NCBI GenBank assembly: GCA_964035545.1
Contig: OZ037770.1
Coordinates: forward strand, 4,620,662 to 4,684,661
DNA from: Bugula neritina
Taxonomy: Eukaryota; Animalia; Bryozoa
Direction of reading: 5' to 3'
Length of the DNA: 64,000 nucleotides
Each line of letters begins with the position of its first letter. Position 1 is the stretch's first letter. Of the stretch, positions 1-59,880 are shown in pieces. The notes beneath the pieces are model-generated. The model did no database searches, was not told where the DNA came from, and saw only the letters and a list, made by a program, of their open reading frames with translations. The position numbers and the translations under genes were made by a program.

Positions 1-293
1 GTACAAATGCATAGTGTATGATTATATACAGTAATCATATATTTGTGTGTATTAGTATTGCATTCATTTAATACTATACTCTATTTTATTTCAAAATATG
101 TAGAAATTTATTGCAACTAAAACGTAATTCCACATGCAAGTGTTATGATATCATAATATATTTAGTACTGAAAAATTTCATTCGGTATTAAAGACCTATA
201 TTTGCTATCATTACATGTTTAGTATTAAGAATTAACATGGTAAATCACTTACCTCTCGTTTGTACTGACAATAGAACTATAATATGTTTTTAG

Positions 294-640
294 GTTATGG
301 AATCTACAGGAGTTACAGATACTAGACATATCAGAGAATAACTTCACCAGTCTATACCATCTTCAGTGTGCAGACTGAAAAAATCTGCTAGAACTCAAGT
401 TAATCTTCAATGACTGCATGACATCGTTGAATCAGCTGAGATACTATACTGCTAACACATCTTAGTTCTTTATACTAGGTGGTTGTAATGCTCTTACAGC
501 TCCTCCACTATAAACCTGTAAGAAAGAGGGTTAAATGCTGTGAGACAATACTACACACATTTGGCTAAAGGAGCAGGTAGAAATATTCCATTCGCTACAA
601 TAACTGTATTGTGAAAGACCAGCTTGCAGAGCACTAATAG
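294..640 (+). pseudogene. Degenerate fragment of a paralogous LRR-Roc exon
   Basis: tttag acceptor at 291-293 in phase 2, then LWNLQELQILDISENNFTSL. Clear nucleotide similarity to 32075-32440 ([35 protein letters not shown]), but with frameshifts, a stop (TAA about 510) and deletions through the P-loop. Confidence 0.85.
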
Positions 641-5361: not shown

Positions 5362-5545
5362 CACTAATATTCTACCTTACACTAATAGTCTACCTTACAC
5401 TAATATTCTACCTTACACTAACAATCTACCTTACACTAATATTCTACCTTACACTAATATTCTACCTTGCACTAATATTCTACCTTACACTAATAGTCTA
5501 GCTTACACTAATAGTCTAGCTTACACTAATAGTCTAGCTTACACT
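5362..5545. repeat. 18-bp minisatellite (CACTAATATTCTACCTTA), about 10 copies
   Basis: Direct tandem repeat; the same unit occurs at 61766-62020. Confidence 0.95.
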
Positions 5546-6915: not shown

Positions 6916-6928
6916 ATGGCAACAGCTG
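6916..6928 (+). CDS. First coding exon part (MATA)
   Basis: gccATGGCAACAGCTG|gtgagt; phase 1 fits the next exon; acceptor at 6851-6852. Confidence 0.6.
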
Positions 6929-9900
6929 GTGAGTGAGTTTAAATACTCTTTTATTCACATATTTCTTGGAAAATAGAAATATATAAACTCTGAAGATATG
7001 TTGATGTTGTGCCACCAGAATTTAATATAAATCTATAAAACTATTTTATTATCATGCACTACTCTCTATAGTACTGTTTTATGTCACCAATTATCGTATT
7101 GCTTTGAGAATAGTAGAATAGATAAAACTATGCAAGCATTTGGGTTAGGGTTGTCTAATCTCAACACAATAAACACTGAACTATAAACTATACATAAAGT
7201 GATTATTTAGAAAGAATATAAAGCTATGCAATAAAATATATGTTACGTTAGTCATTGTCATAATTACTGAAATCCACCACAATATATGACAGGTGTCAGA
7301 ACGACATACATCACCTGCTAGCACTGTGTAATAATCACACTGCCACTGTATGATGTTACAGAGAAGATGAAAATTTGGTTCAGACATTCTGGACAGCCTC
7401 CTGTAGACTGGTCAGATGTACTGTGTGCTGATACCAAGTCATATACTACTGCTGAGGTGAAACGTGAAGTTGGGAGTTATCATATCACAGATCTGAAAGT
7501 GGAAGGGGAAATTCCAAGTAACATTGGAGAGATTGCTGGTAGAGCCCTGTGTCTATATGTTTTTAAACTGAGTGACGGAGCAAGTCTAGACAAGTGAGTG
7601 TCTATTAAAATAGCTGTGGAAATGATAAATGAATTCAGTTGTGTTATTTATTAAATGATAACGGATAATAGATGCTGAAGTTAAAGCATCTTTTTGCTCA
7701 TAATATATTCATACAATATAATATATATCAATATAGTAATATGTGCAACATTAAGCTTATAGTTGTAGAAACTAAGAAATGTAAAACTGCCTCTACTGCT
7801 ACTTCATAGTATTGATTAAATCATGTTTTATGTATATATAGCTAAAAGCTGGAGTAATGTACAGTTCATAATATATTATACAAAAGACTATGTTATGTCA
7901 TCAACTGCAAATTTACAATCTTAAACATTAGTTAATATATTAATTTACAGAGCATTGTAGAGTGAGGCCTCATGTACTATAAACTAACAGCTAACCTTCC
8001 TCTCCTCACCTACAACATAATATAACTGAAACTCTTTGGTGTTTTTTGCAACAATATATCTGTTTCCTGCATCTTTTATGTTGAATACACAAGTAGTCTG
8101 ATATAATGGTATATATTATTTTGATATATGACACACTTTATATCATGTTAAAAAACCTAAATATGCATATTTTTTGAAGTTATCTAATAGCTTGTCCTAA
8201 CGTGTAAATAATACAGTTTAATGGCATGCCATTGTATATCCTTATATCACAGAACTTTTCATAATCAATAATAAAACAGCCATCTGTAGTTTACTGGCAA
8301 TCATGGTAATAATTGAATCTTTCTTAGCTTCTTGCATCAATCACTTTGATTATCCATTACTCGAATGAATTTATTTTCTGCATTTTTTACCTGGTTGACT
8401 GTGCTTAGCAATATTATATGTACAGTGTCTATTTTTATGACACAGTAGACTACATATATCATACACTTTATATTACAGTCTGTGTCAGCTGACTCAGTTA
8501 GAGAAACTAGACATAGGAGAGAATCCTCTCAACACAGTACCTGAAGTTGTTTCATCACTCACATCACTTAAAAAGTTGAATATGAAGAGATGTAAATTAT
8601 CTACTTTACCTGAGAGGTTTGTGTGTTGCACTATTTCTTCTGTCTTAAACATTCAATATTTAACATATTTAATGCTTATTAAGTAGTGTTATGCAATGTC
8701 ATCATGTATTGCAAACATATGTTGAAAAACCTAAATATGCATTTCTGAAGTTATTTAATAGCTTGTCCTAACGTAGAAATAATACCGTTTAATGGTATGC
8801 CATTGTATATATCCTTGTATATCACAGAATTTTTTATAATTAATTAATAATTAATAATAAAACAGCCATCTGCAGTTTACTGGCAATCATAGCAATAATT
8901 GAATCTGTCTTAGCTTCTTGCATCAATCACTTCGACTATCCATTACTGCAATGAATTTGTTTTCTGCATTTTTCCCTGGTTGACAGCGCCTTAAGCAATA
9001 TAGTCTATACAGTGTATATCATTATCACACAGTAGACTACATATATCTTACCCTTTATGATTATTGCAGTCTATGTCAGCTGACTCAGTTAGAGAAACTA
9101 GACATAAGAGATAATCCTCTCAACACAGTACCTGAAGTTGTGTCATCACTCACATCACTTCAGGAGTTGGATTTGGAGAGCTGTGAATTATCTAATCTAC
9201 CTGAGAGGTTTGTGGAGTTTTTTAATATTTCAAACATTCAATAATTCACATTTTGATATAATGCTTACCAAGTATTGTTGGTTAGTATACCATTATGTAC
9301 CATTAAAAGGGTAAAGCTATAGATTGTAATTTGCTTGAGATTATATTGTATTATGGTTTCTCGTAACTTGCAAATGAACATGTTTTATTCATTTGGCATT
9401 ACATACTCTAATGGTATAAACCTTCGTTTACAAATAATATAGCATCCACTCGTAATTTACTAGTATCTATTTCCCATTAAATGCTTATTAGCTTTCTGTA
9501 TTTTACTTTGAATATACCTTGTCGGAATAAATTTGTATATAATATTATCCTGAACGAGTTGATTACATATATCATGTACTTTTTATTACAGTCTATGTCA
9601 GCTGACTCAGCTAGAGAAACTAAACATAGGATTGAATTCTCTCAACACAGTACCAGAAGTTGTGTCATCATTCACATCACTTAAAGAGTTGCATATGATG
9701 GGCTGTAAAATATCTAATCTACCTGAGAGGTTTGTTCGTCACAATACTCTTTCTGTTTCAAAAAGTCAATCACTCACATCTTTACATGCTTGTCAATTAT
9801 TGCTAGAGTATATAATCCTACATTGTTATATTCAACGGCCTTTCGATTTTTTTCTAGTAGTTTTTCACATCCTGTGAATAACCCAGTTTCATGGCATGAG

Positions 9901-12900
9901 ATTGTATGTTATTATGCCACAAGAACTTTTTGTAATTTATGACAAAACAGCCATCTATAGTTTACTGGCAATCATGTGTTGTGCGAAGCACAATATTTAT
10001 GTGGGCTTTCTAGTGAGCAATCAGCATTTAGTCACAAGCAATTCACTGGTCATCTCGTTTTATAAACTTTATTATAAACTATAAATATGGCGTAAAAATC
10101 TCTATAAGTATTATCACAATGCTACTTTACATCACGGCAAGTATACGCTAACTAACTAATAAATTGTTCTGCTTGGCTTCATCCAATAGTTGCCAATCAC
10201 TCTCTGAACCACGCCCTATTACACCGCCCCCCCCAACAGGAAGCATGCCTTCCTGATATGCACCCATAACAAAAAAAAATATAAAACAATTTATTACATA
10301 AAAAAAACCAAAAAAAAATATAAGATCTGAACATCACGTAAGGTGGACATCTCCAAAAGAGTTTACACACTATTGAGCAAATTTATGTATTGGCACAAGA
10401 AAAATATAATGATAAAAGAAAACAGAATAATACAATCACATATACGGAGATCGTGAAGCAAGGAGATTAGAGACGGCCAGAGGAGGGGAGAACGGAGAGA
10501 GAGAGATCGTCACCATCTGCAGGTGCGCATAGTCAGAGAAGTGAAGAGGGGGGATACTGCTATCATCAGTCTTGGTCGCCCCGTTTGAGGAGGGCCACCG
10601 AAGCTTTGAGAGTCTTCATCTCGGAGGCGGCTGCGGCAACTCTGGGGGTTAACCGTTGAATCTCAGCTTCTAAGTCATACATACGGAGCTCGACTTCTTT
10701 TATATTGCGAGCTGTGGGAGCCTGCCGTTTTGGGGAGGAGGGATGCCAGCAGCGTTTTTGAAGAGGGTTGTATAGAAGTGGGAGTGGGGGAACGTCATTT
10801 CCGAGGTATCTCGACTCTGTGGAGTAGGAGTCGAGGTAGGGTGGAGGGACGAGGTATAGTCTGTGCTGGAGGAGAGTGAGGTGACTTGGTAGGTTTCTTG
10901 TGTCTAGGGGGTCTTGGGCACGGTCCATGAGTGATGATGCGAGGGGAGGGGAATCCTTGTTTGAGTCGTTCAAAGCGGGGGAGATCCTTAATGAAAGGCT
11001 TGATCAGATTGAGAAAGGTGGGGAAGTTGTACTGGTCAACATCATACAGATGTCCCACATGGCAGTCCATAGTGCGCTGATGTTTGAGGATGTAGTCCCT
11101 GTGGTAACTACATTCACCACAGGGACAGAGAGTAGTTAGGAAGTGTTGCGGTACGTGGACGCGCAAACGGCGATGGGTGGAGAAGTGCTGCTGACACAGC
11201 CTGCAGGTGGTGCATTCGTCATGGCCGCGGTGTAGTTGAATCTGTTTTTCTGTGTCTGGTGCGACCCAGCTATGTTGTTGAAGTAGCACGTCTGGTAGGG
11301 ATGTAGGAGGTGTCTCACCGTTCCAGGCCAGTTCTAATGGTGGCATGTCTCCGTAGTTAGGAGAGCGAGTGGCGTCTAAAAGAGCAGAATTATTGTTAGA
11401 TCGAGTTTGATCTTTACAGCATAATTCTGATGACAATCGACTGTTAATAGTCTGAGAGTCATGCATCTTTTTATACGGCACTCGAGAGACTGTGTCAGAA
11501 CGTGTAAACTGACTGAGAGACATAGTATCAAGCTCCAGATCTAGTAGATCGTCCGCCATTACTATGTCCTCGTCGTCATTCACGTGTGACTCTGTCTCCA
11601 GTAACTGTGATTCAATCAGATCGATTAAATCAGAGTTGACTGAGGTGAGATCTATTTCCATTAGTGGAGTGTTAGATCTAAGCAAGCTTACCTGGGAACT
11701 CGGTATTTATACTCATACTCGACGTTCAAGATTGGATGTGGATGGATTAAAAAGCACGTCTACTCTTGACCGCGTCGGCGTAGGAAAAGGCTGGGCAGAG
11801 TGTTTGTTGTGCGAGACCGGAACTATGTGCCCGGAGAGTGGTAATTCCACTCGCTATTCCGTTTTCGCAAAACTTGGTTTTTCCGTTGTGTTCATAACTC
11901 CCACGCTTTGCTGCCAGTCTTTCCGTACGGCGCCCAGCTGGACTTTCATACCTGCCGCTTGTAATGCGGTCGCGTACAAAGTCTTGGAGATAAGCTGGGG
12001 GTCTTCTAGTACGTTGTCCCCTTTCAAGGAGGGGGGAGATGTACTAGTGGTAGACACCGGGGAAGGTGGTGTAGCTGGTGAGGGAGGTGGTGTAGCTGGT
12101 GAGGGAGGTGGTGTACTCACCAGTGGGTTGTTATTTTCCACTGGTGGTGTTTCCTGCCTCCCGTCAGCCGTTATTCTTTCTTCCCCTCTGTTTTCTCCGG
12201 ATGGAGCCCCTCCCGTGTGGAGTTTTGCACTTCCGGAAGTATACTCATTTCCGGAAGTGGTGGTGGTAGCCCTGGGGTCAGACGGCTTGGTTCTGGAGGC
12301 AGAGGGTGTGGCCCCGTTGGGGGAGGTGGCCTCTCTTGCCTTGCCAAGTCTTCCGTCCGTGGCATGACCCACTCATCATTGGGTTTATGCCGCCGCCGCC
12401 CGCGCATCGTTGTCTGCCTCCTGGGCTCTAACAATGGGGGGCACCCCCGGCCGCACCTGGGCTAGCCCAATAGGGTTTCAAGCGGGCTTCATTCTGGACA
12501 GATATTTGTCCAGACCGCTCCAACTTGTAAGTGTGATTGGGCATCACCTCAACTACCACGTAGAGCTCTACAAACTTAGGCTGTAGTTTAGCCGCCTGTC
12601 CTCGACGCCTACGGTAGTTGATCATCCAAACCCAGTCTCCGGTCTGGTAGAGGGGTGGCTCATCAGCGTCTTCCTGTCACACCTGCCACTGCTTATCCCG
12701 CAGTATTTCGTGTGCGACTTTCAGACGCTCTATCAATTCCCCAGCCTACTCGTGGACAGAGTATTCTGGCTCTGGAATATGATAGGCGAGGTGGTCGGGC
12801 ACTCGTGTCTCACGACCGAGTGTCAAGAGGTTGGGGGTCTCGCCGGTGCTGGTATGTGGCGTGCTGCGGTAGGCCCGCATGACCTGCGGCAACACGAGAT

Positions 12901-15900
12901 TCCACTCCTCCTGGCCTCGGCCGAGTAGTAGACTGCGGAGTGCATGCCCTGCATCCGGTTGTTGCGTTCGACCACTCCGTTACCCTGAGGGTGGTATGGA
13001 GTGGTCCTACTTTGGTTTACTCCCCAGAGGCGACAGAGGTCGCTCATCAGTTGAGACTGGAATTGCGACCCCTGGTCCGAGTGTAGTTGCTCGGGCAACC
13101 CAAAGTAGCAGAATACACGCTGATCTAGTGTGCTGGCCACTGTCGGGGCAGACGCGTCTGGAATAGCCAGTGCGTCTGCCCACCTAGTGAAGTGGCCGGT
13201 CAGCACTAGAATCCAGCTGTTTCCTCTGGGGGTGATGCGCATGGGTCCGACCAAGTCAACAGCTACCACCTGCCAGGGCCTGCCAGCATAGAGCCTTCGC
13301 CGTTCCGCTTCCCTGGGAAGACGGCCATGCTTGCTGGCCTGGCAGACTTCGCATTGCTTGATCCTTAGGCGGACGTCACGCTCCATGTTGGGCCAATACC
13401 ACTGGAGCCTTAGCTTTGTAAGCACCCTCCGAACTCCGGCGTGAGCCTGTCGGTGGGTGTCTCATACTAGCTCTCGGCGCATGGCGGCTGGGCAGATCAC
13501 CCTTTCTCGACCAGGGTGTCCCTGGTCGGCGGCCAAGGTGATGGTCAGCAGACCGTTTGGCCCGATCCGCAGAGAGTCCCAGTCTTGGCCGTACAGCCGT
13601 AATTCGGCGCACCCCTGCCGCAGCTGTTCTTCACTTGGTCGTCGCCCTTCCCGTTTAGCTCGATATATGTCAGCTACCACCCCAGGGAGGTCCTCCTGGA
13701 GTTTCTGCAGCTTTCTGACATTGCGAGCTAAGACAGGGTTGGCGCGGAGGTTGTTGACAGCCTTCGGTGGGTTAGGGCTCCTTGGTCGGAGTTGACCTTG
13801 GTCCCAGTCGTAGCTCACTTCAGGGTGGTCCAGTGTCGCCAACTCGGATCTTGGGGGACCCCCATTCCTTCTCTCGATATGGTGACACTGTTTACACCCC
13901 TCGTCCGACCGCCGACTCAGCCCGTCTGCATTGCCGTGTTTCCTACCGGGTCGATGTTCGATCCGGTATGAAAACTCGGCCAGGACTTCGAGCCATCCGG
14001 CGACTTGACTGGACGGTTCAGCTCTCTTACACAGCCAGATCAAGGAGGCGTGGTCCGTCCGCAAGCGGAACGGCCTACCGTAGAGATAAGGCCGGAAGTG
14101 TTTCACTGACTTGATTACTGCCAGCAACTCCTTGCGAGTGATGCAGTAATTGCGCTCTGGGGGTGAAAGTGATTTGCTGTAATAAGCTGCGACTACTTCA
14201 CGGCCCTCTTGTACTTGCGACAGCACAGCACCAACATTCTGGTCACTGGCGTCTGTGTCAAGGATATACTCCAGAGCGGGGTCTGGGTAGGCCAGAATTG
14301 GAGCCTCTAGCAAACGGCTCTTGAGACTGTCGAATGCCCTTTGTTCGACGGGTATCCACTGCCAGGCCAGCCCCTTTGCGATGAGCCGATTCAACGGCTG
14401 TGCAACTCCCGCAAAGTCTGGTATGTATTATCTGTAATACCCTACCAGCCCCAGGAAAGCCCGGAGTCCGGTCAAATCCTGGGGGTGACCCAGTCGGCCA
14501 CAGCCCGCACCTTATCGGGGTCCGTCGCCACGCCATTACGGCCGACTACGTGCCCCAGGTACTTCACCTCCGGCTGCAAGAGAGCGCATTTGGAAGGTTT
14601 GAGCTTGAGACCGGCACCTCGGAGACGCTCGAAGACCTCCCGCAAATGACTGACATGGGTCGGGAAGTCTGGGGAGATAACAATGACATCATCGAGGTAG
14701 ATCAGCAGTGTCTTCCAATGGAGCCCGCTGAGGACTTGCTCCATCAGCCTCTGGAAGGTAGCAGGAGCAGAAGTTAACCCGAAGGGCAGTACCTTCCACT
14801 TCCACAGCGCGTCTTGGGTGATGAACGCCGCTTTCTCCTGGGCGTCGGGACTGTGGGGAACTTGCCAGTAACCACTCAGCCAATTTAAAGTACTGAAGTA
14901 CTTGCTGCCGGCTAAGGCGTCCAGGGAGAGGTAGGGGAGGTAGAGGGTAGGCGTCCTGTATGGTTACGCTATTAGGTTTGCGGTAATTCACACAGAACCA
15001 CCAACTGCCGTCTTTTTTCCGGACCAGGACGACCGGCGAGCTCTACGCACTATGTGCAGGTTCTATGAGGCCGCGGTCCAGAAGATCCCGGACTTGTCGG
15101 CTGACCTCCCTTTCCTTCTCTGGCCCCAGTCTCCGGATGGGTTGGCGGATAGGCAAAGTCCCGGCAGCTAGCGGTATCTCGTGACGGACGGCTTTAGTTA
15201 AGCCCTCGTCCTGGTCTCCGCTGCTGAACACGTCCCCATACTGGCGCAGCAACTGGGCCATAGCCTGGCGCTCCCTGTTGCCCGCACAGCCTTCACAGGC
15301 TGACTTGTATAGTTCTTGGACGTGTTCCGGGACAGTCCCCCGCCGTGCAGACGGGCGCTCTTGGGGACCCTCCGTCGCTTCGCCCAGCGACGGTCCTATG
15401 TCTCCCTCTTGGACCGTGTGGAAACGGCCCAATAAGGATCCAGACGGTAGTGTCACTGACTCTGAAAAGGGGTTGACGCACTGAACCAAGATCTCCCCCC
15501 GGTCAGTCAGCCGATTCAAGCTGCTGGCGAGTTGGATTCTCTGGTGCGTTTCTTCGACAACCCCTAATCCATAGAGTTGGCGGTCATTCACTCTACAGTG
15601 AATGGTCGCCCGGGAGCGGCCGGGTACCGTACAGTTACGGACCACCTGCACGCCCCCGACCAGGGGGCGATCGAACTTGTCGACACAGGAAAGCTCCCGG
15701 CCTGCCATTAGTATGGCGGACTTATGGAAGTCGATGTGGCACTGGTGTCGCTTCAAGAACGGCGTCCCCAGGATAGCGTCCTCTTCCAGCTGGCTGAGGA
15801 TAATAGTTTCCTAGATGGCCTGGTTGCGGACGCGGCCAGGCAGCTCTACAACACCGTAGAAAGGGATACACGACCCGTCTGCGAGGGTGCCAGGTTCTCC

Positions 15901-30900: not shown

Positions 30901-33900
30901 TCTTATATAATTTCTATAATGCCATCACATAGCAACATACTTGACTCAATCAACTGTATTGTGAAAATGTTACACGTAAAAGTAAATTAAAAAAATTCTT
31001 AGTGGATTATATAGTATTTTTGATTTAGGTAATTTAAGTTCTACTTTTAATTATTTTGAAGTAAAAGATCTGCCTTTATATTGTAAACCAAAGAGAACAA
31101 AACAAATTATTCAATATTGCAATTTTGTTTTTTTTACATGCTTTACTTTAGTTGTCTCTCTCCAATTCTCAATGTAAAAGAAGCCAATTTTTATCCTATA
31201 CTTGTTCTCAAGCAGCCTGTTAATATATTGTTGTATTCTTTCGTTGTGAAATAATTCACAACTTCTACTTTCTGTCTAAAAATATAATGCATTTATTAGA
31301 ATACTTAGTGAGAAGTTGTGTCAGAAGTATTTTATTTTACTTGAAATTACTTTAATGCCTTGCGTAGATGTTTCAGAGCTGTACTGTGCTCCTATTTGAT
31401 GATAAATTGCATGTATTATGGCACATAAAACAATATTCCTTATAATTATATCATCCATATAATAGAATACCAGTGTGAGCTGTTACTCAGTGATCAGAAG
31501 TGTCAGAAGTATTTTATTTTCACTTGACATTACTTTAATGCCTTATGCAGATGCCACAAAGCTGTAGCCTACCATGTTCCTTATATTTGCTGATAACTGT
31601 ATCATGGCACATACTAGAAATTTTCTACTCTGTATTATAAAATATTATTCCTTCTAGTAGAATACTTGTGTGAACAGTTACTCAGTGATCTGCCATATAG
31701 AAAAAGATTTCTGTATGATAGTATTCTGTCTAGGGTGTGTTTTTATGACAGTACTTAGTACAAATGTAGCACTTTTCTTACCAAATATACTTATAATTAT
31801 ACTGTTATATATATCTCTATGAAATACTTAAAACTTTATGCATCGTATATATATAATATGATACCCGTACATAATTGTAACTTAGACATACTTGTTTTCT
31901 TTCCGTAATTAATGTACTAATTCAAGGTATTGTATATAAACTTGTTATAGCAACTGCAACTTAGTACTATATTATGTGTAATTATTGTTATATTAATATT
32001 GGGTATCTTTATGAAAACTGTTATATCAATTACCTGTAGTTAGGTTTAATAATAGAAATATTATATATTATTAGAATACAGAGATTAAAGAAGTTACAGA
32101 AACTCAACATTTCAAAAAATAAATTCACCAATCTCCCATCTTCAGTATGTGCATTGAGCAATCTGCACACACTGGATATATACTACAACGAATTTATGGA
32201 ATCTTTGAGCCCTGAGATACTACAGCTAACACATCTTAGGTCCTTCGATACATTTGGTTGCAATGCTCTTACATCTCCTCCACTGGAAGTCTGTAGAAGA
32301 GGACTCGATGCTGTGCGACAATACTACACAGACTTGGCTAAAGGTGCTGGTAGAAATCTTCCATTTGCTACAATAGCGGTGTTGGGGAACACCATGGCAG
32401 GTAAAACCAGTCTAATCAGAACATTACAGAGCACTGACAAGAAAAGAGTTTTAACTGACAGAAGTCCTAATGCAGAGTATGATGAGACCACAAAAGTGTT
32501 CAATGTGGAAGAGGTGGAGGTGGATGGTACAACTCTTCGTCTCATAGATATGGGAGGCCAGGAGGTCTACCATATCACATACCATTTAACACTGAGACAG
32601 AATTGTGTACCAGTAATTGTAGTCAACATGGAGCAGTATGATCAGATTTCGAAAATGTCTACAGACAGAGAGGCTGTGAGAAAGCTGGCTTTTGACTTCA
32701 TGTCTCACCTCTATCTCGCTCATCCAACTCTTGGCCCACCTAAGCTTGTTTTCACACACAAAGATAAGTTTCCGAGTGAAGTTTTCCAACAGCTTCGAAA
32801 AAAGTTTCTTAAAGTTTCTGAGAAGTTATGCAAAAATATTCTTGAAGAAGAGAAAAGTTTAGAAGGTGACTTTGCGCGAATTCAACATTTCACTGCATCA
32901 AACGGAAAAGTGTTCTCCAATGACAACATATATGAAGTTGGGAAATTTGACGAGTACAAGATATTTGAATCGATTAAAAAATCTCTTCTTCAAAGTTGCC
33001 AACACTTTGTGAAGCCACTTCCAAAAGTCTGGGAGGATGTCAACAACAACATTTTGTCATTACAGACCTCACATAACACCTTTGATGAAATATTGGCTAT
33101 GATAAACGAAAAGCAGGATAACATTGAAGCAAAACACTTGGATACGATTATCATGTACATGCATGATTGTGGCAAAGTTCTCTGGTATAAACATATTGAT
33201 GCACTCAGGCCATACATATTTCACAAGATCACGGAAATTACCAAGCTACTCTGTGTCTTATATCATCATGATCCAGACGTTTGGCAAAGTAGAGTTGATC
33301 AGTTCCAACCGTATTTTTCAATGGAAGGAGTGAGGATTGAAAAACAAGAATTTGAAGAGTTTGTGAATTCCTTTAGAATCAATGGCTTGATGATGAAATC
33401 TCTTCTTGTATATTTGATTAGAAAAGAAACTTCGTTCACTGGTGAAAATGATGTGAAAATTGCTGTTTGCTTGCTCAGAACATTCCGTTTATTGTATGGC
33501 CCTTTGAATAATGATTCTGAAGATCCGTACTTCATAGTCCCTCAGTTTGCCAAAGAATCCTACAGCCTCTCCTACACTCCGCCAAAGGAGCTGATGCTTC
33601 ATACCGAAACGCAGTTTAATGGTCTGGCATTACCACAGCATGTCTACCATCAGATGACGGTTGGTTTGCTCGAACTATTTGCTGACGATTCTGCCACAAT
33701 ACAGGTGAAGAGAAATGGAGCAAATGTCTATCAAGATAAAATATATACACAGCTGATACATGACTATGAATCTAAAAGAGTTTTGCTCTACGCGTCATCT
33801 GATGCAAATAATATCACCAAAGCGTGGGAAAAACTCATTTCAGTCAACAACAACATCCTCAGACATGTTATGGAAACTTGGACTGCCAGTCGTCCAGTCA

Positions 33901-36900
33901 CTGCCTGCATCTGTGCTCACTGCTTACTGCTAGGTGTTCCGTGCCCTAAAAAGTCTATTCATCCTAAATGGTGTTTTCGCTCCCTGATGAAACCTACACC
34001 AGTTGTCAAGAAGTGCAGCGGATCTTCAACAATCTTGTGCAATAATGAGGAGATCCCAAGAGCTCTGATTTTTCCATGTATGTATCACTAATATTGTTTA
34101 TTACTATGATTTTATAAATGGAAACTTTTGCCTACTACATAAATGATTTTCATTACTACAAACTCTGAACAAAACCTGCTAAAATTTTTTTAAATTTGAA
34201 AATAATCAAACAAAAGGCATTATGTCTCGTGTTGTAACATTCTTGCAGTGGTTCTGTCGCAACTTATGTTTAGCTACCATTTAAGTTGATTACAGTATAC
34301 ATAATATGTGAGCTGGTTGTAGTATATGTAGACTGCACTGTTTTATTCAGGTGAGGCGTTGTCTGAGAAAGAAACCGATGAGCTCGTGAAGCTATTGACT
34401 CAACTCAAACTTCGTAAACATCAGAATGATGTAACCAGAATTGGTATATCTGTATAATACTCACTTTATCAACCTTTAATGTTATTATAGAATTCAGAGA
34501 TCTCAATACATGCAGCAGTCGTTTACTCTGACTAGAATTTTTAGAAAACTGATTGTTTTTGTCAAGCGATCAAGGAAATGGCAATTTTGCTATTCTTCTG
34601 TTTTTTAAATCCTGGTATTAGCCAATAAAATCATGTGACTGCAGATGATGATGGTGATCTGAGTGATCTCTCTGAAGATGATGACAATCTGTATCCTGAT
34701 GAAGACAATGAGAAAGACATGAAGTTGATACAACCCAACCTAAAGACTACCAGAAACCTGAGGATTAAGAATCTTTTCTCAAATGCTGAACAGGTTGGTG
34801 CATCAGTTTAGGGTCATATGTTCACCCTATTCGTTAGATTCTTATGCTTGTATAACCTATTCTTAGACAGAACATTATAAACACATGCATCTGTAGCAAA
34901 ATGATACTATTTACTGTTAGCTTTATTATTAGGCCATGTGTGCCTCAAACATGTTTAACTAGATTTACAAATATGTCAACTAATACTATCATTTTTAGTC
35001 TATTTGTATCCAGGTGCTCAGTATGACCAGAGAGAGAGGAAGAGCTCTGATAATAAACAACAAGAACTTTGTTGAAAGACCAGACTTATGCAGGGAAGGT
35101 TCAGATGCTGATGTTGAGAATGTGTCTCTCATGTTGAGATCTCTCAAGTTTGATGTTGAGACACACTCAGACCTGACAGCAGAGGTATGTTGTTATGGTG
35201 AAAACAATGCGAGCACTATTTAACCATCAAGTAGATTTTCGTATATAATGTCTTGTTTGTTCTTTAACCAAATATTTTGTAAAGTTTGTAGTATATTTTA
35301 ACAAAATATTTTTTTTTACATTCACTGAATTATATCTTTAATTGTACTTAAGAATTTTTCTAAAGCTGCATTGAAAATTTTGGGTCTTGTTAGTTTTTGC
35401 TCACTTTTTGGTCTTTTGTTAGGTTGATGAGAAAACTTTTTGCTCACATTGCATATGAGTCAGCTTACTTCATTTAGTACACACCAGGAAATTATGACCT
35501 AACATTAAAGTTTACTCATAATCCATTGAAATTTACCATACATGGTATTTTTATGTGCTGATTTTAACTACGCATAACAGAAAAGGTTAGCTAGGAGGGG
35601 ATTCCCCAACATTAAAGCACAGGTCATTGTCATATGCACTTATTATTTTATATGTGCGGACCGTTACGAAAAAGCTGTGACTGTCTGCAAGTCCAAATTA
35701 GCTAAATAATTAAGAAAGACATGGGAAATTAAGCATAATCAAAAATCATCTTGACTATTTAGTTGTATTTATTGATATGCTATTAGTTTTAGGCAAAAAC
35801 CTATAAATATTAGCACCTAAATTGAAAAAAGTAGCTAAAACTGGAGATTTCAAGTGTGTACTAAATTAAGTAAAATGACCCATAACTCTATAGCAATTAT
35901 TTGACACTTTGAAATGAAGTAAATTTGTTTGACTGTTTAAACTCGTTTTCAAATTTGTAGGAAATGCTGTCTGCTGTGAAGTCTGAGGTGAAAAAAGAGA
36001 AACACAAAGAGTTTGGATGTCATGTACTGGTTGTTATGACTCATGGTGGGGAAGATAACTGCATCTATGGAACTGACCTCGAGAAGGTCAACCTCACTGA
36101 CCTGTGTGATTTGCTCATTCCTTTGTATTTCGATGGAATAAGTAGAAAACCTAAAGTTGTCATACTAGAAGCCTGCAGTGGAGGTAGTTAGTTTGTAGTA
36201 TAAACTTGAACCTTTAGTTCAATGGTTGAACTAGTAAATACTCCCTGTCAGAAACTAGTCATCTAATTAATTGGCGCTTTAACATGATTCATAGTTTGGA
36301 TTGCTTGAGCAACTGGGTGTCTTGAGATTGTTTAGCTCACAATATTAAGGTCGTTGTTATGTTTGTGTTACAGCAAACATTGAAGTAAGCCCAGACAGAT
36401 CTGGTCTTGCAGCAGATCAAGAAGAAGAAACTGAAGCTGCCTCTTCTACACCTTCTGAAGCTAATGAAGAAGACAATGATGAATATCCTGAACCGCCAAG
36501 AAAAAGAATTAGACTCATTAGACCAGTTTCACCACCAGAACCTAGAATAGAAGAGTGTAGAACTCTACGGGATATAGATGATCTTCTTGTTCTGAAGAGT
36601 AACGTCTGTTGTAAGTATAGCAAGAGAAAGTTATTTATTGGTTTGATAAGTGTGCAGCTACAGGTTTTGTCAATCTAAAAGTTTGTTTCCTAAATTTAAT
36701 CTGACCATGCTATATGTAATCTTTTTCTTGTTCTTCGTAAATTGCGAGTTAATGTTCAAAACCAAACAGAATTTAGAAAATTTCAGGCTTGCTCTGTCTA
36801 CACCATGCTTTGAGTTTCATTTAATTTTATTGCAGCATCAAAGAGACATCCTGAGTATGGATCTCCTATGATTAGAGCTCTAGTATCTTCAATCTACAAA

Positions 36901-39900
36901 CATGCCTGTCACCGTGATCTCTACACCATCTTTCAGCAGGTGAGTTTAAAATGATAATTTTGTCAATTTCTACTTGTATATAGAAATATTTTTATGTTTA
37001 GTTGTGTGATAATTTACAATTTGCATGTCCAATGAATAAAATATAATGTAAATTAGGTAGCTTCTTAAAACGTGCTCGTATTTTTACTAATTTATATTTC
37101 TCCCACTGTGCCTGTTGTAAAGGTTAAAGCCCAACCTCAAGCTTTTCTTTAATATATTCTATAGTGGTAGCAGACAACTCTCAGGATCTACTTGCTTAGA
37201 TTGAATATGAATAGGAAAGCCTATAGTGGGGGTGCCAACATGCAAAAATGGGCGGGTGGAGCACATCAATACTAACCTTTGTTGCTATATATCACTGCAA
37301 AGCCAACATTCTACTGATTTCAGATCTGCGAGTACCTTTTTTGTATCTGGGGGGGTTCTCTCGTGAGAGGGGTGGATATACAGGGGTTCAGCATTTTTCA
37401 AGGGGGGACTATGGAACTCTAAATATTTAATTTCCTGAGTAGTTTAAGTTTGACATTAAAAATATTTTCAAGGAATGTTGTACACATATGAAACTTTCTC
37501 TAACAAAAGTTTTGACCAAAAATAAAAAAGTGGGCGGAGCCTATAATATGACAAACTACTTTTTTGCATATACCGGATATTCTCTAAACTGCTTCTTTTC
37601 TGTTCTAGCATTTAGAATGTTGATTTTTGGTATGAAAATACTCTATTGTGTTCTAATAATGCTCTCCGATTTTCATTACGTTCTGAACTCTATAACATCT
37701 TTCCCAACCATGACAAATAAAAACCATAAAACGGGAGTTATCTCCTCCGTTAAAAATTATTGCGTTTCTGCCCAATAATATTGCTTTTTGTTGCTAGGAA
37801 CAACATCTGCATGATAAAAATGTATTTTTAGCGTATTTATATTAGCTTATTGACTTATTTTGAATCATTGATTACGATCAATACTATTGAGTATTAATAT
37901 TCAATATTTACTGTATAAATTGAGTGTCAGCAATAATTAACAGACCACTAATATTCGATTTTTTTATCCATAAGTATAGTAACATAAAATATGGTTCATA
38001 AAAAAGTAATATTATGATTTCAGCATCACAAGCAATTACTATGCTCTTTTATATCAGATATTGGTAGACATCTGTAATTGTATTTATTTATAAATAAGAT
38101 AGTATTTAAAATTTTAATTTACAATAGATCAAGCTTTATTACAAAGTTTTGTTATCTCTAGCGTTTATATACCAAATTAAATATATTATAATTCTTCATC
38201 AGAACTGTGTTTGTTGCCATCATCATCATAATCAGGCTCTTTGTTTGAAAAAGAAGACTGGCCACTTTCGTTTTTGCAATCGAAACATTCACATAAACCA
38301 CAGCATTTCATCATCAGGCATTTCATCATGCATGCTTTACTCTTACAGCCTGCTTTTTTGCATTTACATGCTGTTAAAATCACATCTGCGTTGCTCTCAA
38401 AATCATATTTTATCACAAAACTTAGTCAAGAGACATTGCTGAATATGAAAAAGTCACTTGAGGATTCATGTAATCTAAATACAGCATGGCTATTGGCAAG
38501 ACTTGCCCCAGTCAAACTATTTCAATTGGATATAAGTCCTTCTACACATAACTGCCCCAGCTGGAGTAGCTTTAATGTAAGAAATTTGGTTGCCACAGAA
38601 GATAATAAAAGATCAGTCATTGGGTATTGCCCAATGATTAATGCACCATCAACAGATCCTACAACAATCTATACAATCCTTCTGCAGCTAACGAAAACTA
38701 TGAAAGTTTTAAATCAGAAACATTCAGTAATTACATTTGACCAAGCTATCTACAAGATGGCCAAAGAGATTCAATGGAACAAACCAACTGAATTTTCAAA
38801 CACAATAATTCGAATGGGCGGTTTTTATATCTTGATGAATTACATGGCAGCACTTGGCAAAATGGTAAAATCAAGCGGCCTCGCCCAAGTTCTTGTACAC
38901 AGTGATATATATTCTGAAGTTACAGTGAAACAGGTGCTATGTGGTAAGCATTATAACAGAGGTGTACGGGCACACAAGATTTTTTATAAGGCAATATCAA
39001 GGCAGAAACTAAAATTTCTTTCGGAATGGCTTCAATAAAATGATCAGTTTGACCCATTAGAGTCTCATAATACGTATTTCTATTGACGATAACTTGCGTG
39101 AATGGACCACTGTTGCAGATAAAGTTGCTACTGCTATAAAAAAGTTTGACTCTGATACTAAATTAAAATCTAACCTTTCAATGTTCTGGAATTCCTACCT
39201 TCATGCAGTAGAAGCCATGTTGGGATTTATTCGAGCTGAGCGTAGTGGCAACTGGCAATTATATTTGGACAGTATGCAGGCAATGCTACCAGTATTTTTT
39301 GCGTATGATCGCACAAACTACTCAAGGTGGCTGCCTATATACCTTATTGATATGCTAAATTTGCCTGAATCTGCTCCAGAAGTTTATGGAATGTTTGCAA
39401 AGGGTTCATTCACCGTAAACAGGACAGGAAAAAAAATTGCAGGTATGGCTCCAGATCAAGTCTTGGAGCAAACTTTGAACCGAGACAGTAAAACATCTGG
39501 AGGCATTATTGGCATTAGCAACCATGAAGAAGCTCGGACAAAATGGTTCTTAACTAGTCATATCAGAGCCCAACTGCTTTCTTTGCAAAAGGATTTTTGC
39601 CAAATAGCCTCACAGTCATCAACACTACACAAGGAAGACACAATCATTACAACTTATATGACGGATGAGATTGATACGCAAGCAATTCTTTTTACATTGC
39701 AGCAGTTTGATGTTAAAGTGTTTAGCAATACTTCAACTGAACTTATTAATATTGCTACTGGAGTAAGTCCCGATGCAGAGACCTTCTTGTCAATAGTGAC
39801 TGCTATGGCTCAGGGAGGAGAAATGGCTCAAAAGTTTTTTCAAGATAGACTTTTGAATACAATAAAACCATTTTACACTGCTATTCACCGGCTTAAAATC

Positions 39901-42662
39901 CCTTCCTTTGACTTTGTGGCTAAATCACTTCAGCCGGCCATTAAACCAAATGTTCCTAAAATATCATTTGCTAAACTTCTCATAAGTGCCAAAAGTGCCA
40001 AAGATTTGCATACAGTTCTAGAGAAAAAAATTGGTCCTATTCCTCTTGCTCTATTTACTGAAAACGGACAGATGAGAAAAACATGCAAATCGCAACTAAT
40101 GCATATTTTGGAACAGAAATATCTTGGAAACAGGGTCTCCAATGATGATACTCAACTGTCCACCGACAAATCGATCATTATTGATGGTATGTGCATACTT
40201 CACTCGACAAAAACATCAGGCACTTTTTATAGCTATGCTCTGAAGATGTTGGAAATATTTCTTGAATGTGGCAAAGGATATACAAGGGTTGATGTAGTGT
40301 TTAACTTGTATTCTGAAACATCAATTAAAGCACAAGAGCGTATTAGACGGGGTGCCCAATAGCTGTGCTCTATTTCCATTATTCATAACAACCTGCCTGT
40401 TCCTAAAAACTGGAGTGCTTTTCTGAGCAATATTCACAACAAAAATGAGTTGGTAGATTACATAGTGAAGGTGCATGGAGTAGACATATTGAGAAAATTC
40501 CAGCTGGTACATTTTTAGTGTGTAGCGCCAAAGAAGTCTGTGTTCTGCAAAACTATTATCGTTAAAATTGTAACAAATTGAAATCCAATCATGATGAAGC
40601 AGACTTGAGATTAATCCTTCATGCAGCTGATGCACTGAGTGATTACGATTTGATAGTAATAAGATCAGTAGATACCGATGTTGCTATTATTACGCTTAAC
40701 ATCATCTTAGTAATGTTTTAACTGAGCAGGCTAATAAAGATGTAGTAATCTTCGTTGGAATGGGGAGTCACAGAAGATATATGTCTCTTTTTGAATCAGC
40801 CAAGAAAATCTACAAAAAGTTCTCAAGAATCTATTATCACTCCATGCACTTACAGGTTGTGACTCAGTAAGTTCTATCTTCCGAATATCTAAAAAGCGTG
40901 CTTTGGAGGTACTTGAAAAGGAAAGCTATAATCTGTCTTTAGGTTCTAATGATTGGTCCCCAGTATCAGAAGAAACATACTTAGAGTGTGAATGATTTGT
41001 CTCCAACCTATATGCTGCCTATGATGATATCACTGAAGCAAGAGATAAAATATTGGATTTAAAAAATGTCTCCAGTGAAGCACAGCTACCACCTAGTAGG
41101 AATTCCCTAGAATATCACGAGAAACGAGCCAATTATCAAGTTACACTTTGGCAACTTTCTTTTACACCTATTTTACTTCATCAGCCAATTTTCGACCATG
41201 GTTGGGATACTAACTTGACTCCAATAAAATATGATTTTGAGAGCAACGCAAATGTGATTTTAACAGCATGTAAATGCAAAAAAGCAGGCTGTAAGAGTAA
41301 AGCATGCAAATGCAAGCGCCTGATGATGAAATGCTGTGGTTTATGTGAATGTTTCGATTGCAACAACGAAAGTGGCCAGTCTTCTTTTTCAAACAAAGAG
41401 CCTGATTATGATGATGATGGCAACAAACACAGTTCTGATGAAGAATTATAATATATTTAATTTGGTATATAAACGCTAGAGATAACAAAACTTTGTAATA
41501 AAGCTTGATCTATTGTAAATTAAAATTTTAAATACTATCTTATTTATAAATAAATACAATTACAAATGTCTACCAATATCTGATATAAAAGAGCATAATA
41601 GTTGCTTGTGATGCTGAAATCATAATATTACTTTTTTATGAACCATATTTTATGTTACTATACTTATGGATAAAAAAATCGAATATTAGTGGTCTGTTAA
41701 TTATTGCTGACACTCAATTTATACAGTAAATATTGAATATTAATACTCAATAGTATTGATCGTAATCAATGATTCAAAATAAGTCAATAAGCTAATATAA
41801 ATACGCTAAGAATACATTTTTATCATGCTGATGTTGTTCCTAGCAACAAAGAGCAATATTATTGGGTAGAAATGCAATAATTTTTAACGGAGGAGATAAC
41901 TCCCGTTTTATGGTTTTTATTTGTCATGGTTGGGAAAGATGTTATAGAGTTCAGAACGTAATGAAAATCGGAGAGCATTATTAGAACACAATAGAGTATT
42001 TTCATACCAAAAATCAACATTCTAAATGCTAGAATAGAAAAGTAGCAGTTTAGAGAATATCCGGTATATGCAAAAAAGTAGTTTGTCATATTATAGGCTC
42101 TGCCCACTTTTTTATTTTTGGTCAAAACTTTTGTTAGAGAAAGTTTCATATGTGTACAACATTCCTTGAAAATATTTTTAATGTCAAACTTAAACTACTC
42201 AGGAAATTAAATATTTAGAGTTCCATAGTCCCCCCTTGAAAAATGCTGAACCCTTGTATATCCACCCCTCTCACAAGAGAACCCCCCCAGATACAAAAAA
42301 GGTACTTGCAGATCTGAGATCAGTAGAATGTTGGCTTTGCAGTGATATATAGCAACAAAGGTTTGTATTGATGTGCTCCACCCGCCCATTTTTGCATGTT
42401 GGCACCCCCACTACTAGTTTAGCAGCTGAGAGTTGTACCTTATCACAGCTATAAGTAGTTAGTTAGAACACAGTCTTACTAGTCATTACTTACTCTACAG
42501 GTGGACACTAAACTAGTGAAGAAACTGTATACAGATGAAGATTCAGAAAGAAGCAGAAATTTGGTTGTAATCTGGAATACTCTTCCATTCAGTAAAAGAC
42601 TTTACCTTTTTCCTGGCTTTGATGGGTTTAATAGAGAGGACAACTCCTCACTCAGCACATAA
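6916..42662 (+). CDS. Multi-exon LRR-Roc-COR (ROCO)-caspase fusion protein, about 1956 aa if all exons are included
   Basis: Manual GT-AG splice with consistent phases and no stops: 6916-6928, 7362-7593, 18 LRR exons (8479..29478), 32075-34077, 34351-34443, 34645-34793, 35014-35184, 35961-36183, 36374-36610, 36836-36939, 42501-42662. Sum is 5871 nt, divisible by 3. gccATGg start context. Confidence 0.8.
7362..7593 (+). CDS. N-terminal exon ([14 protein letters not shown]...DGASLD), domain not recognised, possible LRR N-cap
   Basis: acag acceptor; AA|gtgagt donor in phase 2, matching the LRR exons. Confidence 0.75.
8479..8616 (+). CDS. LRR cassette exon 1: [45 protein letters not shown]
   Basis: 138 nt, AG/GT flanks, phase 2-2, two 23-aa LRRs. 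Confidence 0.9.
9070..9207 (+). CDS. LRR cassette exon 2 (DIRDN / DLESC)
   Basis: 138 nt, AG/GT, open frame. Confidence 0.9.
9592..9729 (+). CDS. LRR cassette exon 3 (NIGLN / HMMGC)
   Basis: 138 nt, AG/GT, open frame. Confidence 0.9.
9977..10223 (-). repeat. 3' LTR
   Basis: TGTTG...TTACA; matches 17137-17418 apart from short deletions; adjacent polypurine tract on the - strand at 10224-10240. Confidence 0.92.
10566..12372 (-). pseudogene. Extra ORF region between pol and the 3' LTR: Pro/Thr-rich segment, C2H2-type zinc fingers, C-terminal coiled coil (broken into 11854-12372, 10795-11685, 10566-10973)
   Basis: [21 protein letters not shown] and [23 protein letters not shown] motifs; heptad [18 protein letters not shown]; same strand as pol. 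Confidence 0.6.
12428..16230 (-). pseudogene. pol: Gypsy pol (protease, RT, RNase H, integrase), frameshifted
   Basis: LLDSGC protease; LIYLDD RT; LDTDAS...RKELLA RNase H; CEVC, VDLVGP, HSDQG, VERNNR integrase; KLQPKF GPY/F-like tail. Confidence 0.93.
16146..17030 (-). pseudogene. gag: Gypsy gag with an in-frame stop near the 5' end
   Basis: [17 protein letters not shown]...QWP...LREVLTERA; position between the PBS and the protease. Confidence 0.75.
17118..17135 (-). promoter_or_regulatory. Primer binding site complementary to the tRNA-Leu 3' end
   Basis: TGGTGGCAGCGGTGGGAT, 1 nt from the 5' LTR; complement of the ...ATCCCACCGCTGCCA-CCA end I recall for eukaryotic tRNA-Leu(AAG). Confidence 0.8.
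17137..17418 (-). repeat. 5' LTR
   Basis: Direct repeat of 9977-10223. Confidence 0.92.
17695..18678 (+). pseudogene. LINE ORF1 (PHD-like finger plus RRM-like region), stop at about 18154
   Basis: ORFs 17695-18156 and 18226-18678 are in the same frame; motifs [26 protein letters not shown]. Confidence 0.75.
18737..21469 (+). pseudogene. LINE ORF2 endonuclease-reverse transcriptase, multiple stops and frameshifts
   Basis: Collinear fragments 18737-18850, 19151-19438, 19947-20222, 20429-21469. Confidence 0.9.
21875..22012 (+). CDS. LRR cassette exon 4 (DIGWN / DMWSC)
   Basis: 138 nt, AG/GT, open frame. Confidence 0.9.
22435..22572 (+). CDS. LRR cassette exon 5 (WIGWN / HMMGC)
   Basis: 138 nt, AG/GT, open frame. 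Confidence 0.9.
22691..22828 (+). CDS. LRR cassette exon 6 (YIGLS / DLRRC)
   Basis: 138 nt, AG/GT, open frame. Confidence 0.9.
23262..23399 (+). CDS. LRR cassette exon 7 (NIAKN / DMSSC)
   Basis: 138 nt, AG/GT, open frame. Confidence 0.9.
23828..23965 (+). CDS. LRR cassette exon 8 (copy of exon 5)
   Basis: Offset 1393 from exon 5. Confidence 0.85.
24084..24221 (+). CDS. LRR cassette exon 9 (copy of exon 6)
   Basis: Offset 1393 from exon 6. Confidence 0.85.
24655..24792 (+). CDS. LRR cassette exon 10 (exon 7 with one K>E change)
   Basis: Offset 1393 from exon 7. Confidence 0.85.
25221..25358 (+). CDS. LRR cassette exon 11 (CIGKT / DMESC)
   Basis: 138 nt, AG/GT, open frame. Confidence 0.9.
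25791..25928 (+). CDS. LRR cassette exon 12 (ELGHN / DLRRC)
   Basis: 138 nt, AG/GT, open frame. Confidence 0.9.
26366..26503 (+). CDS. LRR cassette exon 13 (copy of exon 7)
   Basis: 138 nt, AG/GT, open frame. Confidence 0.85.
26932..27069 (+). CDS. LRR cassette exon 14 (CIGKT / NMESC)
   Basis: 138 nt, AG/GT, open frame. Confidence 0.9.
27520..27657 (+). CDS. LRR cassette exon 15 (copy of exon 14)
   Basis: Offset 588 from exon 14. Confidence 0.85.
28108..28245 (+). CDS. LRR cassette exon 16 (HIRFN / DMWSC)
   Basis: 138 nt, AG/GT, open frame. Confidence 0.9.
28779..28916 (+). CDS. LRR cassette exon 17 (DIGCN / NMMSC)
   Basis: 138 nt, AG/GT, open frame. Confidence 0.9.
29341..29478 (+). CDS. 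LRR cassette exon 18 (HIRDN / NMGSC)
   Basis: 138 nt, AG/GT, open frame. Confidence 0.9.
29890..32000. repeat. Diverged intronic tandem duplication, unit about 1.04 kb, plus a partial extra copy at about 31500-31700
   Basis: CATACTTGACTCAATCAACTGTATTGTG at about 29892 and 30935; many collinear shared blocks follow. Confidence 0.8.
32075..34077 (+). CDS. Large exon: terminal LRRs + Roc GTPase + COR domain
   Basis: Phase-2 acceptor; [17 protein letters not shown] LRRs; SPPLEVC hinge; P-loop [19 protein letters not shown]; COR-like LPKVWE and [10 protein letters not shown]; C-terminal CAHC/Cys cluster; T|gtatgt donor. Confidence 0.92.
34351..34793 (+). CDS. Two linker exons (34351-34443, 34645-34793), acidic, joining COR to caspase
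   Basis: Canonical splice sites, compatible phases 1-1 and 1-0, open frame. Confidence 0.7.
35014..36939 (+). CDS. Caspase (peptidase C14) domain exons 35014-35184, 35961-36183, 36374-36610, 36836-36939
   Basis: [32 protein letters not shown] (catalytic His), [12 protein letters not shown] (catalytic Cys), [17 protein letters not shown]. Confidence 0.9.
37224..42413 (+). mobile_element. Academ-type (AcademX-like) DNA transposon, rearranged, with 1190-bp inverted arms
   Basis: TAG...CTA termini; 3-bp CTA duplication at 37221-37223 and 42414-42416; 37224-38413 is the reverse complement of 41224-42413; internal transposase + XPG-like nuclease + Cys-rich finger. Confidence 0.85.
38414..41451 (+). 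pseudogene. Academ-type transposase / XPG-like nuclease / Cys8 finger, 5'-truncated, with stops and frameshifts
   Basis: [80 protein letters not shown]...CCGLCEC. Confidence 0.82.
42501..42662 (+). CDS. Last exon: caspase small-subunit C-terminus
   Basis: ctacag acceptor, phase 0; VDTKL...[15 protein letters not shown]...ST*; KxLYLFPG resembles caspase C-termini. Confidence 0.85.
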   Translation: MDTKLVKKLYTDEDSERSRNLVVIWNTLPFSKRLYLFPGFDGFNREDNSSLST

Positions 42663-58359: not shown

Positions 58360-58443
58360 TTATATATATATATATATATATATATGATATATATATATAA
58401 TATTATTATATATCTATATATATATATATGATATATAATATTA

Positions 58444-58489
<46 letters not shown>

Positions 58490-58540
58490 ATATCATTATA
58501 TATATAATGTATATAATTTAATATATAATATAATAATATA

Positions 58541-58586
<46 letters not shown>

Positions 58587-59259
58587 ATATCATTATATAT
58601 ATAATGTATATAATTTAATATATAATATAATAATATATTATATATGATATTATTATATATATAACATGATATATAATATAATAATATATTATATATATTA
58701 TATATGTTATCATTATATATATATTATATATATAATATAATATACAATATAATATTATAATATATATATATATATATATATCATATATAACATAATATAT
58801 AATATAATAATATATTATATATGATATTATATATATATAATATATATATAATATAATATATAATATAATAATATATAATACATTATTATAATATCATTAT
58901 ATATATAATGTATATAATTTAATATATAATATAATAATATATTATATATGATATTATTATATATATAATATAATATATAATATAATAATATATTATATAT
59001 ACTTTGTATGATATTATTATATATATAATATATATATAATATAATATATAATATAATATTATAATATATATATATATATCATATATAATATAATATATAA
59101 TATAATAATATATTATATATGATATTATATATATAATATATATATAATATAATATATAATATATTATTATAATATATATATATATGTATATATTATATAT
59201 AATTTTATTATACTTGTATAATATATATATATATAATATATAATAATATATAATATATT

Positions 59260-59324
<65 letters not shown>

Positions 59325-59441
59325 ATAATATAATATAATAATATATTTTATATGATATTATATATATATATAATATATATATATATAATATAATATAATA
59401 AATAAGATATAATATATTAATATAATATATATATATATATT

Positions 59442-59473
<32 letters not shown>

Positions 59474-59818: not shown

Positions 59819-59880
<62 letters not shown>
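58360..59880. repeat. 1.5-kb complex (TA)n / (TATAA)n low-complexity tract
   Basis: Almost purely A/T. Confidence 0.97.

Follow-up and report, generated by a model that had tools for sequence, protein, structure and literature searches.

A predicted LRR-Roc-COR-caspase protein from the bryozoan Bugula neritina, a candidate single-chain immune sensor and protease

Several described systems resemble a chain in which leucine-rich repeats (LRRs), a Roc-COR GTPase module and a caspase follow one another. Bacterial LRR-AP-GTPase-COR proteins, which have a caspase among their effectors, are predicted to be counter-invader systems (PMC8195603). In amphioxus, "LRRs-caspase" hybrids were proposed in 2008 as a direct link from recognition to apoptosis, with no mention of Roc or COR (PMC2575513). 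The ROCO genes of brown algae show shuffling of phase-2 LRR exons together with selection on the repeats' concave face (PMC3341825, PMC11378527), while the ROCOs of vertebrates and Dictyostelium have varied cellular roles (PMC6337361). The Roco protein of C. tepidum is a dimer when empty or GDP-bound and a monomer on GTP (PMC5714945). This study concerns a gene in a 64,000-nucleotide stretch of AT-rich animal DNA from the bryozoan Bugula neritina (assembly GCA_964035545.1, contig OZ037770.1, positions 4,620,662 to 4,684,661 of the forward strand), here called the window. Between positions 6916 and 42662 of the window, the + strand encodes LRRs, Roc, COR and a caspase in one predicted protein, which may be an immune sensor carrying its own protease.

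The gene model has 28 exons and encodes a 1956-aa protein without an internal stop. All 27 introns are GT-AG, and the phases match when the exons are joined locally. The protein consists of an N-terminal cap, 18 two-LRR cassette exons, three further LRRs, Roc, COR, an acidic linker and a full caspase (Table 1). Database searches were run exon by exon, the joined model was used for local checks only, and the fusion was folded on a homologue from Watersipora, P0030. On the separate exons Pfam reported LRR, Roc, a weak COR-A and Peptidase_C14, and exon 2 matched no known family in Pfam or the Atlas. A first-pass annotation, made from the letters of the window, had proposed a single chain of LRRs, Roc-COR and caspase along a phase-consistent splice path, and the 28 exons, the RNA joints and the homologous fusions described below bear this out.

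Table 1. The exons and motifs of the fusion gene, followed by the mobile elements in its introns, in window coordinates
Feature	Position	Strand	Detail or basis
Exon 1	6916..6928	+	start ATG, donor gtgagt, phase 1; predicted
Exon 2, N-terminal cap region, ~77 aa	7362..7593	+	phase 1-2
LRR cassette exons 1-3 (starts 8479, 9070, 9592)	8479..9729	+	138 nt each, phase 2-2
LRR cassette exons 4-18	21875..29478	+	tandem exon+intron units
Exon 21: three LRRs followed by Roc GTPase and COR; CxHC motif at the end of COR	32075..34077	+	2003 nt
Roc G1 P-loop	32385..32411	+	motif and alignment
Roc G3 motif	32547..32564	+	motif and alignment
Roc G4 motif	32754..32765	+	motif and alignment
Exon 22: helix following COR	34351..34443	+	RNA joints; helix seen in homologue model
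Exon 23: acidic linker, predicted disordered	34645..34793	+	D-[LV]-S-D at 34656-34667 (candidate release site)
Exon 24: start of caspase large subunit	35014..35184	+	Pfam Peptidase_C14 1.7e-9; S1 Arg (caspase-1 R179 equivalent) at 35092-35094
Exon 25: catalytic His 36042-36044, Cys 36174-36176	35961..36183	+	Pfam 7.4e-9; Glu replaces usual Gln before AC
Exon 26: long acidic inter-subunit linker, then small-subunit start	36374..36610	+	
Exon 27: small subunit	36836..36939	+	S1 Arg (R341 equivalent) at 36844-36846
Exon 28: stop codon and final strand of the caspase, part of the dimer interface	42501..42662	+	AATAAA at 43017
Gypsy-type LTR retrotransposon, in intron 5	9977..17374	-	young; LTRs 98-100% identical; broken pol
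LINE-like element, in intron 5 directly after the LTR element	17686..21466	+	PHD-finger ORF1, reverse transcriptase
DNA transposon, in last intron	37224..42413	.	1190-bp inverted repeats (98%)

RNA supports the passage from COR into the caspase. The stretch is represented in 14 sequencing runs, and splice joints were read on the 6-kb stretch 29300-35280, which takes in one cassette and exons 21-24. Reads were placed at 85% likeness, and most of the contigs, 85-99% alike, are paralogues or alleles. Depth is almost confined to exons in runs X2 and X5, is mixed in X1, and continues over introns in X14, as expected of DNA. The joints 34077>34351 and 34793>35014 are present in X1, X2 and X5, and the joint 34443>34645 in X1; all three have GT..AG borders, and all are absent from the DNA-like X14. 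The three RNA-like runs with joints come from three studies. Cassette-to-cassette and cassette-to-exon-21 joints are also present in the RNA-like runs, and loose RNA ends at 35176 run on into the first letters of exon 25. The first-pass annotation had named, as one result that would overturn it, transcripts in which the ROCO part ends at a stop at 34091. The RNA splices out at 34077, which removes that stop from the transcript, and homologous fusions with the same intron positions are annotated in Watersipora and Bugula. A nearer, in-frame donor for exon 22 at 34413 was rejected because RNA places the donor at 34443, giving the 1956 aa of the final model. Separately, retention of intron 21 would add a few residues and a stop (34078-34091), and may yield a caspase-less LRR-Roc-COR isoform, possibly a decoy.

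The middle of the protein is a ROCO module: a Roc domain with G1-G4 motifs and COR directly after it. The Pfam match to Roc has an E-value of 5e-7, and in alignment A1 the G motifs are kept in 47-49 of 49 homologues, with the P-loop Gly in 49/49 and its Lys in 48/49. The match to COR-A is weak, and COR is nevertheless complete, because the confident AlphaFold model of exon 21 (pLDDT 90.8, LRR strands at model residues 9-11, 32-34 and 56-58) finds LRRK1, the C. tepidum LRR-Roc-COR protein and LRRK2 as its best Foldseek matches, along with the isolated COR structure 3dpt. The protein is not an NLR, since its nucleotide domain is Roc instead of a NACHT or NB-ARC STAND ATPase and its repeats are N-terminal. 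It resembles MFHAS1/MASL1-type ROCOs in its LRR-Roc-COR core, its G motifs, its terminal CxHC and its one large Roc-COR exon, and relatives in Watersipora are named "MFHAS1 homolog". It differs from them in its C-terminal caspase, in its ~39 LRRs on cassette exons and in its own long-branch clade, which in a weakly resolved tree stands apart from the Callorhinchus row; with that placement and the caspase it is probably not an MFHAS1 orthologue.

The C-terminal part has the features of a C14A caspase. Exons 24-28 carry the motifs MTHG, EACSG, SKR and KRLYLFPG, and the alignment places the His-Cys dyad and both S1 arginines in a caspase fold with large and small subunits. The dyad and R179 are invariant in the fused bryozoan caspases aligned. 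The best solved relatives are CED-3 and caspase-3/9, and the caspase model of the homologue has a TM of 0.8-0.87 to caspase-3, -8 and -9. No CARD, DED or other death-fold match was found in the window exons scanned or in full-length homologues, which sets the protein apart from the canonical initiator caspases (2/8/9/10); the position of the prodomain is occupied by LRR-Roc-COR. Taken with the ROCO module, the fusion is a real gene and a member of both the ROCO and the caspase families.

In the model of P0030, a helix and an acidic, disordered linker connect LRR-Roc-COR to a separate caspase domain. The linker between COR and caspase is ~80 aa long and contains a D-[LV]-S-D motif in 9/13 aligned proteins, with variants in two more. 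The motif fits a DxxD caspase site and could allow the protease to be released from its scaffold. Weighing against a release site, the region is acidic and of low complexity, Asp is often followed by an unfavourable residue, and the motif also fits a CK2 site.

The LRRs are built from an unusually regular set of exons. Between 8479 and 29478 there are 18 cassette exons, each exactly 138 nt long, flanked by AG/GT, in phase 2-2 and encoding two 23-aa LRRs apiece. The first-pass annotation had counted 36 cassette LRRs and about three terminal ones. The 18 two-LRR cassettes and the three LRRs of exon 21 were found, for a total of ~39, and the figure of 36 may vary with haplotype or assembly, because 14/18 cassettes are distinct (12 after near-copies are merged) and three blocks, 666-1150 bp long, each occur in two identical copies (22227-23376=23620-24769, 22894-23562=25998-26666 and 26881-27546=27469-28134). 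These blocks are either very recent or assembly-related. The cassette donors are weak (GTTTGT, GTCTG), and every cassette can be skipped in frame. Ahead of exon 21, segments 30345-30860 and 31500-32006 are an old (70%) intron duplication in which no cassette exon survives; they may be units that have decayed.

Variation among the cassettes is concentrated at positions 5, 7 and 8 of LxxLxLxxN, on the solenoid's concave face, where 6/45 codons hold 25/48 of the extra amino-acid states (p=2e-10). Diversity at the first two positions of the hypervariable codons is 0.45; four-fold sites show 0.07 and the upstream intron 0.23. This pattern suggests, without proving it, diversifying selection on the concave face. 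The first half of the cassettes does not correlate with the second, and the second half tracks its own downstream intron (Mantel r=0.58, p=1e-4), which points to recombination of cassettes through their invariant middle. The type of the upstream intron does not track the first half, so a model of half-swapping is borne out only in part.

The gene has relatives in two bryozoan genera. A Roc-COR search returned 89 cluster representatives at E <= 1e-30, and the named ones belong to Watersipora subatra and Bugula neritina. COR is followed by caspase sequence in 14 Watersipora and 4 Bugula neritina proteins (~18 annotated fusions), which are annotated as MFHAS1 homolog, CASP8 or uncharacterised; some Watersipora models contain the caspase alone or LRR-Roc-COR alone. 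The gene plan was compared in two bryozoan homologues, Watersipora P0030 and Bugula P0151, and is the same in both: two-LRR exons, a large exon ending just past COR, linker exons, and caspase introns in the same places, with intron positions, phases and linker conserved across the two genera. Judged from these sequences, LRR-Roc-COR-caspase is a bryozoan family, since fusions with the same exon plan occur in Watersipora and Bugula. Contigs of JGI sample 3300003318 are the nearest relatives, and one of them shares the COR-linker-caspase order, with DNA that is 75-92% identical; a related-locus search of metagenome contigs gave no confirmed locus. The P0030 gene (L001) has old, divergent LRR exons with strong donors on the shared exon plan, in contrast to the homogenised cassettes of the copy studied here. 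In the window itself, 293-620 (+) is the pseudogenised start of a paralogous exon 21. It runs from the LRRs to a point shortly ahead of the P-loop and is broken by frameshifts and stops, and beyond it the copy is lost. A large family in turnover agrees with this pseudogene and with the spread of read identities.

The same domain order also occurs in amphioxus, in at least 12 database proteins (e.g. BRAFLDRAFT_67388, P0137). They are alike in their domain order, intact catalytic motif and caspase intron positions; they differ in a short linker without the acidic motif and, in the gene checked, in having the LRRs in the large exon instead of cassettes. In an LG+G4 tree from a quick search, amphioxus Roc-COR modules lie well away from the bryozoan clade and are interleaved with ROCOs that end in a GT4 or a death domain. 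A single Roc-COR clade of bryozoan and amphioxus fusions was rejected with p-AU 0.002, for a group named after seeing the tree and with long branches; in the caspase tree, which included few canonical caspases, one fusion clade gave p-AU 0.18. The shared caspase intron positions indicate a common ancestor for the caspases of both fusions, and the likelier reading of these trees is that the fusions themselves arose independently. Within amphioxus, closely related Roc-COR modules (P0128-P0215) end in a caspase, a GT4 glycosyltransferase or a death domain, or carry OTU, a swapping of effectors like that of the bacterial systems. Another caspase fusion was seen on a marine metagenome contig (L003 514-3324, P0217): an intronless pannexin-like protein with LRRs and a caspase, resembling an LRRC8-like channel fused to a caspase.

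The first-pass annotation had not known this architecture as a characterised family, and as put that does not hold, given the bacterial prediction, the 2008 amphioxus hybrids and the amphioxus proteins above. The hybrids share the idea of a shortcut. The bacterial proteins likewise carry an effector at the C-terminus, after LRR-AP-GTPase(Roc)-COR, with caspase as one of at least 24 kinds, and occur as multiple paralogues; they are prokaryotic and known from prediction only, whereas the bryozoan protease is a metazoan-type caspase and diversification runs through introns. The likeness to brown-algal ROCO receptors lies in symmetric phase-2 LRR exons with duplication and reshuffling, concave-face diversification, and birth and death. 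The algal genes have one LRR per 72-nt exon where this one has two per 138 nt, and no C-terminal caspase is reported for them; alternative splicing has been shown in brown algae. A likeness of another kind may hold with the NLR inflammasome or the Apaf-1 apoptosome and its initiator caspase, which also pair a repeat sensor and a nucleotide switch with caspase activation by proximity. The bryozoan switch is a Roc GTPase with COR and not a STAND ATPase, its sensor is N-terminal, CARD, PYD and DED are lacking, and the caspase is covalently attached. The amphioxus caspase paper, ROCO reviews, the brown-algal ROCO paper and the Aplysia immunome describe no ROCO-caspase, and searches on bryozoan immunity returned nothing relevant. 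A literature search, with most subscription papers outside its reach, turned up neither a publication about the bryozoan family nor experimental work with any ROCO-caspase. The domain order was predicted elsewhere; its expansion in bryozoans, with cassette exons that shuffle, appears not to have been described.

We consider the protein to be probably, at a probability of roughly 0.6, a cytosolic single-chain immune sensor-protease from an expanded bryozoan family of receptor-proteases. The LRR solenoid would bind a fast-evolving non-self ligand, such as something made by a pathogen or parasite, or a host protein that is damaged, and binding or clustering would shift Roc-COR into a dimer mediated by COR. 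If the analogy with C. tepidum Roco holds, which is dimeric when empty or GDP-bound, the dimer would be the GDP or empty state, the resting state a GTP-bound monomer, and activation would come with hydrolysis, so that the switch may run opposite to the usual "GTP = on" logic (PMC5714945). The dimer would bring two tethered caspase zymogens together, which would be activated as initiator caspases are, cut their own inter-subunit linkers and possibly release themselves at the D-[LV]-S-D site. The active caspases would then cleave substrates at Asp and cause cell death or inflammation, with no adaptor or death-fold domain needed. Concave-face hypervariability, cassette reshuffling, the expansion of the family and the neighbouring pseudogene lend the immune role indirect support.

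Several points weigh against this proposal. The ligand, activity, localisation and induction of the protein are predictions. Diversifying selection stays at the level of suggestion because within-codon dN/dS did not exceed 1 (Nei-Gojobori, 0.87 on ten concave codons, where sites look saturated). The monomer model of P0030 has no fixed contact between COR and caspase (linker pLDDT <50, pTM 0.58), and Roco dimers can also be autoinhibited states, as in LRRK1. The contigs are short and of mixed paralogues, and no single one spans all joints or the whole gene. The copy studied has Glu in place of the S1 Gln (Gln283 position), unlike all 18 aligned relatives, and where bryozoan members mostly have QACSG, so its specificity or activity is uncertain, and its caspase lies on a long branch of the tree.

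The last two points would be explained if the family works as described and this copy were a weak or dead protease, one that forms dimers with active paralogues and so serves as decoy or regulator, or were decaying. Three large transposon insertions in its introns, the lack of an obvious Asp-Gly/Ser type site in the inter-subunit linker and a dead paralogue 6 kb upstream would also fit. We nevertheless find this rather unlikely, because 1956 codons run without a stop through 27/27 GT-AG introns, His, Cys, both S1 arginines and the G motifs are kept, and the cassette duplications are recent; moreover, Dronc has a non-Gln residue at the S1 Gln position and is active. A more radical doubt is that the ROCO ends at the 34091 stop and the caspase is an independent gene, the fusion being an artefact of prediction. 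The frame indeed runs into a stop after 4 codons of the intron, no single contig runs from COR to the catalytic exon, and some Watersipora models hold only one of the two parts. Against this, RNA-like runs show a GT..AG joint for each of the three introns in between, two genera share the intron positions, phases and linker, and exon 24 has no start or prodomain upstream of it. The RNA joints and the homologous fusions with the same introns largely refute separate genes, which are highly improbable.

Two other readings keep the protein intact and change what it senses. Bryozoans are colonial and some fuse, and the same switch might recognise a variable ligand from other colonies of the species and kill cells at incompatible fusions, like the fungal NLR het systems. 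Cassette duplication and half-exon reassortment would give individual-specific repertoires, and runs from other individuals do differ at many sites. Such allorecognition is unlikely, however, as dozens of dispersed genes fit pathogen sensing better than a single allorecognition locus, and the same signatures are present in ROCOs of the solitary amphioxus. The LRRs might instead have host proteins or membranes as their ligands, much as Rabs are bound by LRRK2, with the caspase serving polypide regression, metamorphosis or a response to organelle damage. A non-immune signalling or developmental protease would be in keeping with the varied roles of vertebrate and Dictyostelium ROCOs (PMC6337361) and with transcripts in runs not known to be challenged. 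It is quite improbable, since a fixed host ligand leaves the concave-face hypervariability, the cassette turnover and the tens of genes with pseudogenes unexplained.

The rest of the window holds other repeats and one recognised neighbour. The DNA transposon of the last intron (37224-42413) contains an internal 433-aa ORF with only a weak DUF6589 match, and a CXC-like cysteine cluster reaching both arms; a related fragment seems to be present near 63171-63503 (-). Exons of a proline dehydrogenase (Pfam Pro_dh) lie downstream at ~48180-49640 (-). The same 18-bp minisatellite occurs at 5362-5545 and 61766-62007 with similar flanks, probably as part of a small mobile element, and 58361-59879 is a degenerate (TA)n tract of 1.5 kb.

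If the immune sensor-protease reading is right, the gene is a candidate for a class of animal immune receptor that uses a GTPase dimer in place of the NLR wheel. Hardly any work exists on immunity in this phylum, and the convergence of the gene with the exon shuffling of brown-algal ROCOs is striking. A wider and more tentative idea, on balance doubtful, is that the main intracellular immune receptors of bryozoans are built from ROCO GTPases instead of STAND ATPases. There would then be dozens of one-chain LRR-Roc-COR-caspases with cassettes reshuffled in the germ line and perhaps skipped through weak donors, each with a GDP dimer that switches on and then releases its caspase: a GTPase-gated minimal inflammasome that would have arisen independently in bryozoans, amphioxus and bacteria. 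Since caspase activity would be a direct read-out of dimerisation, the protein may also serve as a natural reporter for an old question about ROCO proteins, debated to this day for LRRK2: in which nucleotide state Roc-COR is dimeric and active, and how LRR ligands control it.

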